64,000 nucleotides of DNA, from sequence record PP942979.1. One strand, 5' to 3'. The notes beneath the pieces were generated by a model. That model ran no database searches and was not told the DNA's origin. It worked only from the letters and a program-made list of their open reading frames with translations. This document shows, piece after piece, positions 37,631 through 41,890 of the stretch. The translations under genes were made by a program, and so were the position numbers. Positions within the stretch are counted from its first letter, which is position 1, and each line of letters starts with the position of its first letter.

Positions 37631-38140
37631 TCAGGAGCGTCTATTGAATTTTAGCCAGTCTTTCCACCAATACGTAACGGGCTTGTTTTGCTTGAGCGCG
37701 TAGTCAATACAGTTCTGTGTTCCTGATGGTGCACCACAACACAATGAAATCAGACGATCTGTTTGATCAACCATGTAGTGATTGCGTTTGTTGAGTGCGA
37801 AGCCTGCTTGACCGTCCATGTGAAGCCAGTCTTCTTTTGATGTGACTATTCTTACTTCGTGGCTTTTATTAAGAAGACCGTCAAGTTCAATCACGCTACT
37901 GATTGGCCAGCGAGCATTGAACCCAGGATAAGGTAGACAGGAAACAACTTTATGTCCTTGGGATATTGCGGCAGTCGCTACAGCCATATCAAAGCCAAGA
38001 GCGCACCCGACGTAGATGATTGCATCGTCGTCCAGTGCGAGTAATCTGCGATGTGCGAAAGTATACAGGCGATCTTTTGCCTTAGGGCTGAATCCACCCA
38101 ACGATTGTGGGCGATGACCAGTGAAGGATATCTTTTCCAT
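37631..38140 (-). CDS. SLOG-superfamily protein (YspA/DUF1273-like)
   Basis: ISFTGHRP, GCALGFD, RNHYMVD, SGTQNCIDYA. Confidence 0.8.
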   Translation of the reverse strand: MEKISFTGHRPQSLGGFSPKAKDRLYTFAHRRLLALDDDAIIYVGCALGFDMAVATAAISQGHKVVSCLPYPGFNARWPISSVIELDGLLNKSHEVRIVTSKEDWLHMDGQAGFALNKRNHYMVDQTDRLISLCCGAPSGTQNCIDYALKQNKPVTYWWKDWLKFNRRS

Positions 38141-38179
38141 ACAGAGTATTTACAGAAGCACGTCCGTGTGCCGATACAA

Positions 38180-38545
38180 TTAGACCGTTACTTCGAGGTC
38201 ATGATCGCCTGAGTTCCATACGAGTTCGCGGATGTTACGAGGCATGATGATACAACCCGAAGAGGCAGTACCCGGAGCCTTGATGCTATCGCCGTGCATC
38301 TGAAATGCAGAGCGACCGAACATCTCGTTCTCTTTTGCTGGAGTCAGGTCCATAGCATACGGTCCTGTCTTCTGGCTGGTACGAGGTTTGTTCAGAGTGT
38401 AGCGACCCACAGGCAGAGGGCCCATGCCGACTACGTTCTGAGACTCGTGTTTGTTTTTGTGTTCGCCTTTACCTGCGTAGCCACGAGCGACCAGCTGATG
38501 TTGAGCGTTGAACAGTTCACCTGTCGTTTGTTTATAAATCCACAT
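38180..38545 (-). CDS. Tlde1/DUF2778-like L,D-transpeptidase-fold protein
   Basis: GYAG, GPLPVGRY, GRSAFQMHG...ASSGCI catalytic His/Cys motif. Confidence 0.8.
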   Translation of the reverse strand: MWIYKQTTGELFNAQHQLVARGYAGKGEHKNKHESQNVVGMGPLPVGRYTLNKPRTSQKTGPYAMDLTPAKENEMFGRSAFQMHGDSIKAPGTASSGCIIMPRNIRELVWNSGDHDLEVTV

Positions 38546-38642
38546 AAATGCTCCTTATAGCTCAGTGGTGATTGGAAAGAAACTGGATAAATATTGCATG
38601 TTATAAGCCTTGGTTTTTTATTGTGGAACCACGGCATAGCAC

Positions 38643-38676
38643 AAAAGGGCCTACACCTTTCGATGCAAGCCCTTTT
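38643..38676 (-). terminator. Terminator ending the endolysin-to-ART operon
   Basis: GGGCTTGCATC-GAAA-GGTGTAGGCCC then TTTT; G.U pairs favour minus strand. Confidence 0.8.
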
Positions 38677-38681
38677 AAGTG

Positions 38682-38819
38682 TCAGACTATAACTGTCTTG
38701 ATCACGTTACGGTTCTTCTTTGGGTCGAACCATACTTCTTCAATAATCTTGCCCATGCCGAAGTTAATCATCTGCACCGTGCGTCGGCTGACGAGTTGCA
38801 GACGTTTAGACTGGAACAT
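38682..38819 (-). CDS. 45-aa protein (not in ORF track)
   Basis: MFQSKRLQLVSRRTVQMINFGMGKIIEEVWFDPKKNRNVIKTVIV; AAGGAG SD. Confidence 0.7.
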   Translation of the reverse strand: MFQSKRLQLVSRRTVQMINFGMGKIIEEVWFDPKKNRNVIKTVIV

Positions 38820-38821
38820 GA

Positions 38822-39331
38822 TTACTCCTTAATCATCTTGACGCGTGTGGGATCAAAGATGCCGAAGGTAGGCACATCGTTGTGCTCACCCTCATTACCT
38901 TTAATCGAGTCATACCCAGCAAGTTTGAGTATCTTGCTGATCTCGGTATACTCGTCCCACCACATATAAACCCTTTTGTGTTGCGATGAAGGGATAAGGT
39001 TGCTAAGCGCGTCTAATCGTTTGACAAGAGTTATCGCCTCATCTTTGCCCACCAGATGCAACTGGAAGGCTTCCATGATAAGTTGTTTAACCCTTCTATA
39101 AATCTCAGCGAACTTTACTTCCGTCCACAGAGAACGGAACTTCAAGGTAGCATAGCGACCGGGGTCCGCATGAAACTTGTAGAGACGCCCACCTTCTGCA
39201 TACAGTTCGGCATACGCACGATCTGGAGTTACCCAAGTCATGTGTTGCTTCTTCGCATGATCATCTGACCAGTCTTCTGCAAGACCGCGATAGTAGATAG
39301 TGGGCGCACTCAGACTGACAAAGATCTGCAT
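38822..39331 (-). CDS. ADP-ribosyltransferase-fold protein (ART-PolyVal-like)
   Basis: YYRG, WVTP...A..YA, GYDSI...E...FGIFDPTRVK; N-terminal MQIFVSLSA. Confidence 0.65.
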   Translation of the reverse strand: MQIFVSLSAPTIYYRGLAEDWSDDHAKKQHMTWVTPDRAYAELYAEGGRLYKFHADPGRYATLKFRSLWTEVKFAEIYRRVKQLIMEAFQLHLVGKDEAITLVKRLDALSNLIPSSQHKRVYMWWDEYTEISKILKLAGYDSIKGNEGEHNDVPTFGIFDPTRVKMIKE

Positions 39332-39633
39332 TACTTACGCACACGCAATGCAGGGTCGTTCGCCTTGTCATAGCGATCAGGTCGAACGATAACAACACCG
39401 GTAGGTCCAGTTTTCACTTCCAGCAAGCCAGGAATTTCAAAACCATCGGCAGTGTCTGACACAGGGAATTTCTTCTCCAGCAGTCCACGCATCTTGGTCA
39501 GTCCTTCATTGGACTTGGCGATCTTCCCGCCCTTCATATTACGAATCAGACCAGCACTGCGACCTACGTTGAATTTGAAACCAACAGAGTTCAAAATCCC
39601 AGGCAGTGCTTTATCGATCTGAGCCGAAGTTAC
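39331..39633 (-). CDS. 100-aa -1 frameshift extension of 39630..40364
   Basis: Open -1 frame from A_AAA_AAG (39639-39633) to TAA 39331; no SD-supported start of its own. Confidence 0.65.
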   Translation of the reverse strand, partial: VTSAQIDKALPGILNSVGFKFNVGRSAGLIRNMKGGKIAKSNEGLTKMRGLLEKKFPVSDTADGFEIPGLLEVKTGPTGVVIVRPDRYDKANDPALRVRK

Positions 39634-40364
39634 TTTTTTGAAGCCACCTTGCCTGTAAGAAGTTTTGCACGTTGCTCTTTCAGTGCTTTCTTCTTAGAAG
39701 GTGAGTGGGCACCGGTGACTGCGTTTTTGTTTTTAGGGAAGAGCTTAGCCTTCTCACGGTCAATCTCTGCCTGAGTAACAGTCTTTTTCTTCGCACCTGG
39801 TTTCACCTTACGATCAGATGGAGTGCTGGCATTACCATTGACCATCTTTTCAGCTTTCATGAACTTAGGCTTGAACGCACCACGCTTACCAGTAACACCG
39901 AACTCGGTCAGCTTGGCCGCACGAATAGCTTTCAGTGCTTTGTCTGAGCCAACACCAGTTTTGATATCGGTAGCGGACAGAGGAAGATTCAAACCGCCCA
40001 GATGATGTTTCTTCGCGTGAGAGTTTGCTTCACGAATCAGAGCTTTCGCCTGCTTTATCTCAGCACTGGCTTTGGTCTTCTCGGTTTTACGAGTTTCCAT
40101 CAGCGCAGTACGCTTAGGCCCTCTAGGCAGTTGACGCACTTTAGTGGCGGCGGTATTCGATTTAATCGAAGCAGAGATGCCAGCGATAGCAGCGGCTTTA
40201 GCTTTCTTCAACAGACCAACAACTGCCTGCAATTCAGCCTTGTACTCAGTCGCTACGATCAGAGTAGTAACGCCACCGACACGAGCTACTTTATATGCCT
40301 GAGGTTTAATACGCGCAGACTCGGACGCTACGGTCTGATTAACATTGATTTTAATAAGTGCCAT
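39630..40364 (-). CDS. Lys-rich putative internal head protein
   Basis: Start moved to ATG 40364 (GAGGA SD); MALIKINVNQTVASESA. Confidence 0.75.
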   Translation of the reverse strand: MALIKINVNQTVASESARIKPQAYKVARVGGVTTLIVATEYKAELQAVVGLLKKAKAAAIAGISASIKSNTAATKVRQLPRGPKRTALMETRKTEKTKASAEIKQAKALIREANSHAKKHHLGGLNLPLSATDIKTGVGSDKALKAIRAAKLTEFGVTGKRGAFKPKFMKAEKMVNGNASTPSDRKVKPGAKKKTVTQAEIDREKAKLFPKNKNAVTGAHSPSKKKALKEQRAKLLTGKVASKK

Positions 40365-40374
40365 TTTGGATTCC

Positions 40375-40977
40375 TCAAACCAGGGCTCTGCCTGGGAGAT
40401 CGAAGTTCTTACCAGCCGAGTAATCACCCAGCGCCTGATAAAGGGAGTCACGCAGCATTTGCTGAATGATATCCGAGTTATGTGCCGAAGCGTCTTTAAA
40501 AGCAACCTCGATTGCTTCTGTTCTCGGATTCAATACAGCATAACGCAGCGGGCAGATCTTTTGCACATCACACCACGCGTCGATTCTGATTTGCAAATCA
40601 GGCGTGATTGGAATACGAAAGTCTGATAGTTGAAACACAACGCTCTGGATAGGAGGAGGCGATGACTCTGACTTAACAGTGTCAGTGCCCAGCTTCTCCA
40701 TAGCCATCGCCGCGTTGTACACGGAGGAGAACTTGGTCTTCAACGTGTTTGTTTCGACGAGCTTATAGCTATTCGCAGCAAGCCCTTGACGACGCAACTT
40801 GGCAATCTTAACAACGTAATCACCAGAGTCGTCAGAAGCAAATGCAACGTAAGCGTAGAACACGAAGCCAGACGCTTCACGCAGCAACTTATGATCTAAG
40901 GCGCGGTCACCTATGATAGCATTCAGTTGTTGCAGACCCATCTGGACTTCGCGTGACAGTGAAACGTAGATTTGCAT
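40375..40977 (-). CDS. Hypothetical protein with MQIYVSLSR N-terminus
   Basis: 200 aa, coupled start. Confidence 0.7.
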   Translation of the reverse strand: MQIYVSLSREVQMGLQQLNAIIGDRALDHKLLREASGFVFYAYVAFASDDSGDYVVKIAKLRRQGLAANSYKLVETNTLKTKFSSVYNAAMAMEKLGTDTVKSESSPPPIQSVVFQLSDFRIPITPDLQIRIDAWCDVQKICPLRYAVLNPRTEAIEVAFKDASAHNSDIIQQMLRDSLYQALGDYSAGKNFDLPGRALV

Positions 40978-41315
40978 TAGCGCAGACGAGCGAGAGCCTG
41001 TTTAGCTTTTGCCAGAGTCTGTTCGTAGTTCGCTTCGTCGTCGAACTCAGGCTCCATGCGGATCTCGATGCCAGAGATATTGAAACCTACATCTTCGTCT
41101 TCATCTTTGGTCACCATGCCGAAACGTGCAACGCCGTTTTTGTAGCTGATGAAACGGAAGTCAAGAATATCTTCCGGACCGCCTAGGTCAGACGGCATAC
41201 CGTCATCCAGCAGATCGAAGAACTCTTTCTTCGTCAGTTTGCTGAACACTGCATTAATAGCAGAGGCAGATTCGGACTTAACAGCTTCGTCCAGATTCAG
41301 TTTGATAAGGGACAT
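40977..41315 (-). CDS. Acidic protein with MSLIKLNLDEAVKSESA N-terminus
   Basis: 112 aa. Confidence 0.7.
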   Translation of the reverse strand: MSLIKLNLDEAVKSESASAINAVFSKLTKKEFFDLLDDGMPSDLGGPEDILDFRFISYKNGVARFGMVTKDEDEDVGFNISGIEIRMEPEFDDEANYEQTLAKAKQALARLR

Positions 41316-41317
41316 GG

Positions 41318-41890
41318 TTAGTGTACTCCAACTTGTTTAGTGATTGTGATAACACGCTGGTACCAACCATAGATGTTATCTTCCTGAGTTTCATCTGCCT
41401 TTGCAATGTTCTTCAACTTCGCAATACGGCAGCCGTTGTAGGCATAAGCCAATACTTTAATGTCGCGTACTTTGACATAGGCGGCAAGAGCAGCCAGCGT
41501 CTTCGGACCAACATTCGCAGCAGGAGTAAAGTCAGGGTAGAGTTTACCACGACCATTCAAGATGTTCAGTTGGTCCTGCAGTTCAGCGATTGCTGCTGGT
41601 GGGCCTGAATTAACAGCGTAGTCGAATACCCACAGTGCCAGCTCCTGGCTATACTTCGCAATTTCATCACACTTGCAGAAATCCCAGAAGTTAGCGCTGT
41701 AGATCTTATACGCGATCTCATAAGGCAGGTCTTGCATCGCACCCTTGTAACCATAGGCACGAGCGTTCTTTTCAGTGACGCCCCAACGAGTAGGACCGCC
41801 ACGGTCAGCAGCACGGTTAGTGTACGTCGAGCCACCTTCGCGATCAATAACCTCAGCGATAGCGTTCTTTCTAAACGTCAATGCGTCCAT
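41318..41890 (-). CDS. GH108 N-acetylmuramidase (endolysin)
   Basis: REGGSTY...DRGGPTRWGVT, FDYAVNSG, VGPKTLAAL, YGWYQR. Confidence 0.9.
   Translation of the reverse strand: MDALTFRKNAIAEVIDREGGSTYTNRAADRGGPTRWGVTEKNARAYGYKGAMQDLPYEIAYKIYSANFWDFCKCDEIAKYSQELALWVFDYAVNSGPPAAIAELQDQLNILNGRGKLYPDFTPAANVGPKTLAALAAYVKVRDIKVLAYAYNGCRIAKLKNIAKADETQEDNIYGWYQRVITITKQVGVH

Follow-up and report, generated by a model that had tools for sequence, protein, structure and literature searches.

Does a phage gene written in two reading frames give one protein, and how would ribosomes pass from the first frame to the second? This question is raised by the genome of phB78 (PP942979.1), a jumbo phage (262 kb, genus Alexandravirus) whose isolation host was Erwinia amylovora. 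We analysed a stretch of 64,000 nucleotides (nt) of this record, which is called the window below. The two-frame gene lies at 39331..40364 on the minus strand and consists of 244 codons in frame 0 and 100 codons in the −1 frame. The frame-0 open reading frame (ORF) begins with the ATG at 40364. At its 3' end two lysines are encoded by the in-phase heptamer A_AAA_AAG, and the stop codon TAA follows immediately. From the heptamer on, the −1 frame is open for 100 codons, and its own TAA overlaps the ATG of the downstream gene of 169 amino acids (aa) in the sequence TAATG. The two products would thus be 244 aa (frame 0) and 344 aa (with the −1 extension) long. The gene contains a single frame change, no further stop occurs in either part, and the change sits between an N-terminal domain with a Lys-rich linker and a C-terminal domain. 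In GenBank the locus is annotated as two coding sequences (CDS), SHZ78_186 of 244 aa and SHZ78_185 of 53 aa, the latter inside the −1 frame. A reading of the letters alone, called here the sequence-only reading, had described the ORF, the heptamer, the stop and the two product lengths, and had interpreted them as a programmed −1 frameshift coupled to the downstream gene. We found every element of this layout in place. The observation is confirmed, and the interpretation is partly supported. Judging from the sequences compared here, −1 ribosomal frameshifting at A_AAA_AAG beside the stop codon is the best explanation of the locus, and we consider it probable.

The relatives of phB78 were used to establish whether the two frames belong together. 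By sequence comparison they are one ancestral gene, since both parts are collinear with single in-frame proteins of relatives, in agreement with the earlier proposal. Such collinear alignment was obtained for more than 10 relatives. The 244-aa part aligns with residues 1 to 220–240 of the in-frame relatives, and the 100-aa part with the C-terminal 85–100 residues of many of them. In more than 25 other homologues both parts lie within one in-frame ORF. All other phage records and nearly all database proteins contain a single ORF of about 300–376 aa, which ends at the start of the 169-aa gene. The identity of the 100-aa part is 41% in SNUABM_22 and SNUABM_35, 82% in fHe-Yen9-02, 78% in SNUABM_5 and 82% in a metagenome contig of JGI. 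In Yersinia phage fHe-Yen9-02 (L008, 627..2300), Erwinia phage pEa_SNUABM_5 (L009, 621..2549) and the JGI contig (L033, 88..2049), a 200-aa module and both parts form one ORF of 557–653 aa. In phB78 this module is a separate ORF upstream, SHZ78_187 (40375..40977, minus strand). The alignments show the gene family as a series from fully fused to split. A search for further relatives of the 100-aa part gave only SNUABM_5 in IMG/VR and one in-frame contig in the JGI metagenomes. Several relatives also carry tandem pairs of paralogues (L007, 627..2506; L010, 359..2273; L015, 489..2580), and in some environmental contigs a 232-aa paralogue of the N-terminal part alone follows the 169-aa gene (L027–L029, 2501..3199).

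In-frame relatives, together with a frame change that adjoins a homopolymer, are also what a sequencing or assembly error in the phB78 record would leave behind. The sequence-only reading had named homologues fused in frame, and hence a single-base sequencing error here, as a finding that would speak against it. The in-frame homologues exist. The error is excluded, as independent assemblies share the layout. We found the two-frame layout with the same heptamer and stop in 10 distinct full genotypes and one partial genotype from NCBI, Logan and ENA assemblies. The 10 split genotypes have identical geometry and differ in their flanking genes, and they come from various sequencing projects and assemblers. 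Public runs with the module include SRR17008789, ERR11042369, ERR7015393 and SRR9988208. A sequencing error was therefore rejected, and its probability is negligible. In a protein search, 244-aa proteins from Logan assemblies were matched at 89% and 76% identity. On their contigs the whole arrangement recurs, with the 244-codon ORF, the open −1 frame and the 169-aa gene. The cluster at 90% contains 14 distinct 244-aa variants, and 45 blocks of the sequence collection include the 87-aa ORF that gene callers place in the −1 frame. No in-frame copy of the phB78-type module was found among 5.8 billion proteins. It had been suggested to check whether the heptamer and the −1 frame are conserved in homologues. 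Within the split lineage they are, in 10/10 genotypes, where the −1-frame part is at least 94% identical at the DNA level; all more distant homologues are in frame. Divergence between phB78 and the split sequence L016 (window 38100..41400) is mosaic. The flanks differ by 17–20%, and a module of about 540 nt, which begins at the end of the first part and takes in the second, differs by about 5%. This pattern indicates that the module moved among phage backgrounds by recombination.

Strong selection at the protein level shows that the −1 frame is still translated in the split lineage. In the −1 frame phB78 differs from L016 by 13 synonymous and 2 non-synonymous changes, with a ratio of non-synonymous to synonymous change per site (pN/pS) of 0.05 and a binomial P of 1e-6. 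Identical differences read in the other two frames give a pN/pS of about 2. Over the 10 split genotypes we counted at least 20 synonymous changes against 2 non-synonymous ones, and the variable sites of the −1 frame fall on codon positions 1, 2 and 3 as 2, 1 and 18. The coding-like character noticed in the letters of this frame is thus borne out by its evolution. The same counts bear on gene decay, in which a recent frameshift would have inactivated the C-terminal domain, so that it is no longer made usefully. All other homologues are indeed in frame, and the last 44 codons of the first part are relaxed, with 10 synonymous and 10 non-synonymous changes over the 10 genotypes. However, the selected frame is the one beyond the break, with its 20 to 2 ratio in genotypes that are all split, and it is free of stops. 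The split form occurs widely without a known in-frame twin, and the putatively coupled downstream gene is under strong selection. Decay is highly improbable, and a pseudogene was rejected on the selection evidence.

The position of the frame change relative to the protein domains was assessed on P0013, a natural in-frame relative that stands for the two-frame protein and was modelled with AlphaFold2 (mean pLDDT, the predicted local distance difference test, 79). The model predicts an N-terminal domain with a long helical hairpin (residues 22–178), a disordered Lys-rich stretch (180–212) and a folded C-terminal domain (215–318). The frame change of phB78 maps to the end of the predicted linker. 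In the residue and codon alignment of the heptamer region the split lineage was represented by L016. The C-terminal domain has 6 matches in 1.84 billion representatives, and all but the split ORF are C-terminal or internal parts of longer proteins. Four stretches of a giant protein of 2829 aa (P0059), in which no Pfam domain was found, match the C-terminal domain. The function of the two-frame protein is not indicated by any significant match in Pfam, PHROGs, NCBIfam or PADLOC. A search of the 100-aa part against the sequences of the Protein Data Bank (PDB) gave nothing, and Foldseek with the P0013 model against the PDB gave only helical-bundle noise (E >0.5).

A translated second frame could have a start codon of its own, and we looked for one. 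A credible independent start for the −1 frame is absent. There is no ATG, GTG or TTG before codon 14. Codon 14 is a TTG, the first canonical start of the frame, and it is preceded by none of the Shine-Dalgarno (SD)-like 4-mers enriched at the phage's starts, which were derived from the window's own enriched words before start codons. The only internal ATG with SD support is codon 48, which is preceded by AAGGA and is the start of the annotated 53-aa CDS. The sequence-only reading had denied the frame any SD-supported start; this ATG is one, and yet selection extends well upstream of it. Codons 14–47 contain 7 synonymous and 0 non-synonymous changes (P 6e-5), so these 34 codons speak against the 53-aa CDS as the true product, and we rejected it. 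SHZ78_185 (39331..39492, minus strand) is probably a mis-called CDS, as at least 34 codons before its ATG are under protein-level selection as well. In codons 14–32 alone, 3 synonymous and 0 non-synonymous changes were found.

The TTG at codon 14 leaves room for another explanation, gene fission with re-initiation. The two domains would now be separate proteins. Ribosomes would end translation after 244 codons, and some would restart 35 nt past the stop at this TTG and make an 87-aa protein, feeding the 169-aa gene. Gene callers give exactly this 87-aa ORF on Logan and ENA contigs, the TTG being the first canonical start of the frame, and the selection data are informative only from codon 19 on, which fits re-initiation equally well. 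The predicted break falls in a disordered linker between two autonomous folds. Other fusions and fissions occur in the family, as the 200-aa module, a gene of its own in phB78, is part of the larger ORF in fHe-Yen9-02 and SNUABM_5, and paralogues with the N-terminal part alone exist. But the TTG lacks an SD-like 4-mer, and the C-terminal domain is nowhere else standalone. The alignment and the P0013 model indicate that a TTG-started product would lack the greater part of the first helix in the C-terminal domain, and the residues there are conserved with those of in-frame relatives. The 36 nt between the frame-0 stop and the TTG, which would be a spacer under this explanation, are nearly invariant: 1 variable site was found against 11.2 expected from the synonymous rate of the C-terminal domain (P 1.7e-4). 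Read as codons, the stretch has 0 synonymous changes against 3.3 expected (P 0.04), which hints at an extra signal next to the heptamer. Re-initiation also offers no reason for an in-phase heptamer exactly at the stop. We consider it unlikely.

The frameshift explanation turns on the heptamer. Within the 63 long ORFs that make up 88% of the window, the sole A_AAA_AAG in slippery phase is that of the two-frame gene, and a run of seven A is absent from all of them; the motif exceeds what chance would produce. Lys-Lys pairs in the homologous CDS (L002–L015) are written AAG_AAA in 65 of 111 cases and AAA_AAA in 3 of 111. This codon choice looks like avoidance of long A-runs in the family. A_AAA_AAG is among the most shift-prone heptamers of E. 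coli (PMC5009743, PMC4066793), owing to the single lysine tRNA of this host (PMC5009743), and it is the commonest heptamer of frameshift sites in insertion sequences (IS) (PMC4066793). In a systematic study in E. coli, heptamers without stimulators gave at most about ten times the background of 0.055% (PMC4066793). A phage tRNA might alter the decoding of Lys, but ARAGORN found none in the window and the first 50 kb of the record (114 kb scanned), and the record lists CDS only.

Three candidate stimulators of a shift were found at the site: the adjacent stop, a downstream stem-loop and an upstream SD-like AAGGTG. The last had been pointed out in the sequence-only reading, and it does lie a few bases before the heptamer. 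The predicted stem-loop starts 6 nt past the heptamer and covers 103 nt with an energy of −28.1 kcal/mol (z −1.84); 6 of 200 shuffled sequences were as good. It was earlier stated that no strong downstream hairpin is seen. This is too strict, as a moderately stable long-range stem-loop is predicted. The stem-loop is predicted in 10/10 split genotypes, at −25.5 to −28.2 kcal/mol and with 4 variable sites in its 103 nt. Its stems are not retained in the in-frame relatives.

A run of A can also shift the frame before translation. In transcriptional slippage, the RNA polymerase would insert an extra base into the A6 run of some mRNAs, which would then encode the fusion in one frame. Its product would be identical to that of ribosomal slippage, and A runs are known slippage sites (PMC5009743). 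The lack of seven-A runs in the ORFs of the window may reflect avoidance of slippage and of indel mutation. The run considered here has six A only; efficient polymerase slippage is known from longer runs. Moreover, such a model requires neither the exact phase of the heptamer nor a stop beside it, yet both are present. We therefore regard transcriptional slippage as very unlikely.

The downstream gene of 169 aa (SHZ78_184, 38822..39331, minus strand) may depend on the same event. Its ATG overlaps the −1-frame stop, and no SD-like 4-mer precedes it in phB78; the scan agrees on this with the sequence-only reading. In 13/13 relatives the gene starts −1 to +3 nt from the upstream stop, with ATG, TTG or GTG and with no SD-like motif. 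It is under purifying selection in the split genotypes, with a pN/pS of 0.06 and 93 synonymous against 19 non-synonymous changes. An abutting start without an SD is the pattern of termination-reinitiation coupling, and the coupling itself is what we infer from it. Since the SD-less start abuts the −1 stop, the output of the 169-aa protein plausibly depends on ribosomes that arrive from the −1 frame, and the earlier suggestion that this output may follow the shift rate is plausible in the light of the 13 relatives. In some records a 139-aa version from an internal ATG is annotated (L007, 2597..3016; L010, 2364..2783; L031, 1654..2073). These annotations are probably start-codon mis-calls, because the full frame has a TTG right after the upstream stop.

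The sequence-only reading had called the 169-aa protein an ADP-ribosyltransferase (ART). We compared its predicted structure (mean pLDDT 71) with BFVD, a collection of predicted viral structures, using Foldseek. Entries named 'PolyVal ADP-Ribosyltransferase' and 'ART-PolyVal-like' were matched at E 1e-4 to 3e-4 with template modelling (TM) scores of 0.42–0.44, and unnamed large proteins scored higher, with TM 0.60–0.67. No ART family was found for this protein in Pfam (at E up to 0.1), PHROGs, NCBIfam or PADLOC. The PDB gave no sequence match, and Foldseek against the PDB gave nothing below E = 1. Thus the label finds backing in the fold matches of BFVD and none in profiles, PDB sequences or PDB folds. 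The 169-aa protein is possibly similar to the ART-PolyVal family, which is described in PMC5512222.

Taken as −1 ribosomal frameshifting, the locus would be decoded as follows. Most ribosomes would stop after 244 codons and release the N-terminal helical-hairpin domain with the Lys-rich linker. The adjacent stop codon would give a pause, in which a minority of ribosomes would slip back one base on A_AAA_AAG, with the host lysine tRNA re-pairing in the −1 frame. The slipped ribosomes would read 100 more codons and make a minor 344-aa fusion with the domain order of the in-frame relatives. Those that reach the end of the −1 frame would stop at the ATG of the 169-aa gene and start again on it, and the output of the ART-PolyVal-like protein would in this way be tied to the shift rate. 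What we infer is that ribosomes slip and how often they do so, that the stop and the predicted stem-loop contribute, and that the 169-aa gene is coupled.

Several points weigh against this explanation. All of the evidence is drawn from sequences, and no trans-frame peptide or footprint was seen; we found in the literature searched no virion or infected-cell proteomes for phB78, AD1 or Y3 and no ribosome profiling of these phages. The SD-like element lies nearer to the heptamer than the spacing at which such elements stimulate −1 shifts. The stem-loop beats shuffled sequences by a small margin (z −1.84), and with 4 variable sites in its 103 nt the shallow lineage offers no covariation to support it. 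Only this one lineage of Alexandravirus phages, phB78 and at least nine environmental genotypes, has the two-frame state, and because it is shallow conservation of the heptamer in 10/10 genotypes has little power. Some of the synonymous differences could in principle have been imported from an unseen in-frame relative, since a module less diverged than its flanks shows recombination. The natural 232-aa paralogues, which consist of the N-terminal part only, suggest that the 244-aa product may suffice alone. Finally, as unstimulated heptamers are weak (PMC4066793), the shift yield could be well below 1% unless the stop or the structure helps.

Could the heptamer be older than the split? It is kept in phase in five in-frame relatives, namely fHe-Yen9-02, SNUABM_5, the contig L033, SNUABM_3 and vB_Ea_2910A. 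In all five a −1 slip would meet a stop after 1–3 codons. The heptamer at the domain boundary may thus be an old recoding site used in both polarities, with two isoforms in a set ratio. In the in-frame relatives a slip would give an N-terminal-only product beside the full-length form, with a geometry like that of dnaX. In the phB78 lineage the polarity would be flipped, so that the short form comes from standard decoding and the long form from the slip. The three lineages with a close C-terminal module all keep the heptamer, although 53–73% of their four-fold sites differ, and the codon before it varies (Val, Ala, Ser) and retains A in the third position. The heptamer appears in these alignments to be kept across near-saturated synonymous divergence. 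All 4 in-phase heptamers among 17 in-frame homologues lie at the domain boundary, and two of these four sites have a hairpin 5–6 nt downstream. On the other side, 3 of the 5 homologues with 'LTGKK' use non-slippery codons, and most family members have no heptamer. Use of the site in both polarities is a speculative idea, to which we give a low probability.

The two-frame gene belongs to a block on the minus strand with an endolysin at its head and a Tlde1-domain gene at its end. The endolysin (41318..41890, minus strand) is recognized by Glyco_hydro_108 and PG_binding_3 in the precomputed Pfam annotation of relatives. After the 169-aa gene there is in most relatives a 45-aa gene, which in phB78 lies at 38682..38819 on the minus strand. 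The Tlde1-domain (L,D-transpeptidase-like) gene of 121 aa (38180..38545, minus strand; PF10908, E 2.9e-16) is a conserved downstream neighbour. Its protein has an extra weak match to the YkuD L,D-transpeptidase, and the gene stands downstream of the block in all relatives. Tlde1 is a peptidoglycan-directed enzyme domain that is better known from effectors of type VI secretion. Just past the 45-aa gene, at about 38640..38690 on the minus strand, a GC-rich inverted repeat with a T-run was seen by eye. It is a likely intrinsic terminator of this gene block, and it is absent from the output of the consensus scan. No credible promoter or terminator was found between the two parts of the two-frame gene. 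With the endolysin, small genes, the 169-aa gene and the Tlde1-domain gene as neighbours, the locus stands outside the usual context of tail assembly chaperones, as had been stated.

We compared the phB78 gene with known cases of recoding. The orfA-orfAB arrangement of IS3/IS911 has the same A_AAA_AAG (PMC4066793), an upstream ORF that ends just past the site and a fusion as the minor product. In contrast to it, the phB78 gene does not encode a transposase, its stimulators are candidates, and its two-frame state is young and not ancestral, since the homologues are ordinary in-frame genes. E. coli dnaX, which gives tau and gamma, has the same heptamer, the same reliance on the single shift-prone lysine tRNA of enterobacteria (PMC5009743) and two products with a common N-terminus; however, the shift truncates the product in dnaX and would extend it in phB78. 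The tail assembly chaperones of the G/GT type are also phage genes in which a late −1 shift gives a minor product extended at the C-terminus, but the phB78 gene does not lie between a tail tube and a tape measure gene and has no relation to them in sequence or fold. In compensatory frameshifting, also called 'corrective' or 'savior' of an indel (Atkins et al. 2016, PMC5009743), an indel next to a shifty run is offset by a low-level shift that restores the ancestral product, as would be the case here. Unlike such cases, the phB78 state is fixed in a lineage of many genotypes, the downstream frame is under strong selection, and either product may be of use.

In practical terms, GenBank, with its CDS of 244 aa and 53 aa, and the 87-aa calls on metagenomes overlook the likely fusion of 344 aa. 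Should the slip not occur, the locus would still be a clean case of a domain that was separated from its gene, lacks a proper start codon and is kept under selection. If it is real, a widespread wild lineage needs recoding to make a two-domain protein that close relatives make from one frame. The dose of an SD-less downstream gene, possibly for an ADP-ribosyltransferase of the polyvalent type, would be tied to the shift rate. The frameshift site would have been caught soon after its birth, and phB78 and its in-frame relatives would form a natural before-and-after pair for studying how a slippery Lys-Lys pair that already exists becomes a programmed site, and which ratio of the short to the long product a phage tolerates.

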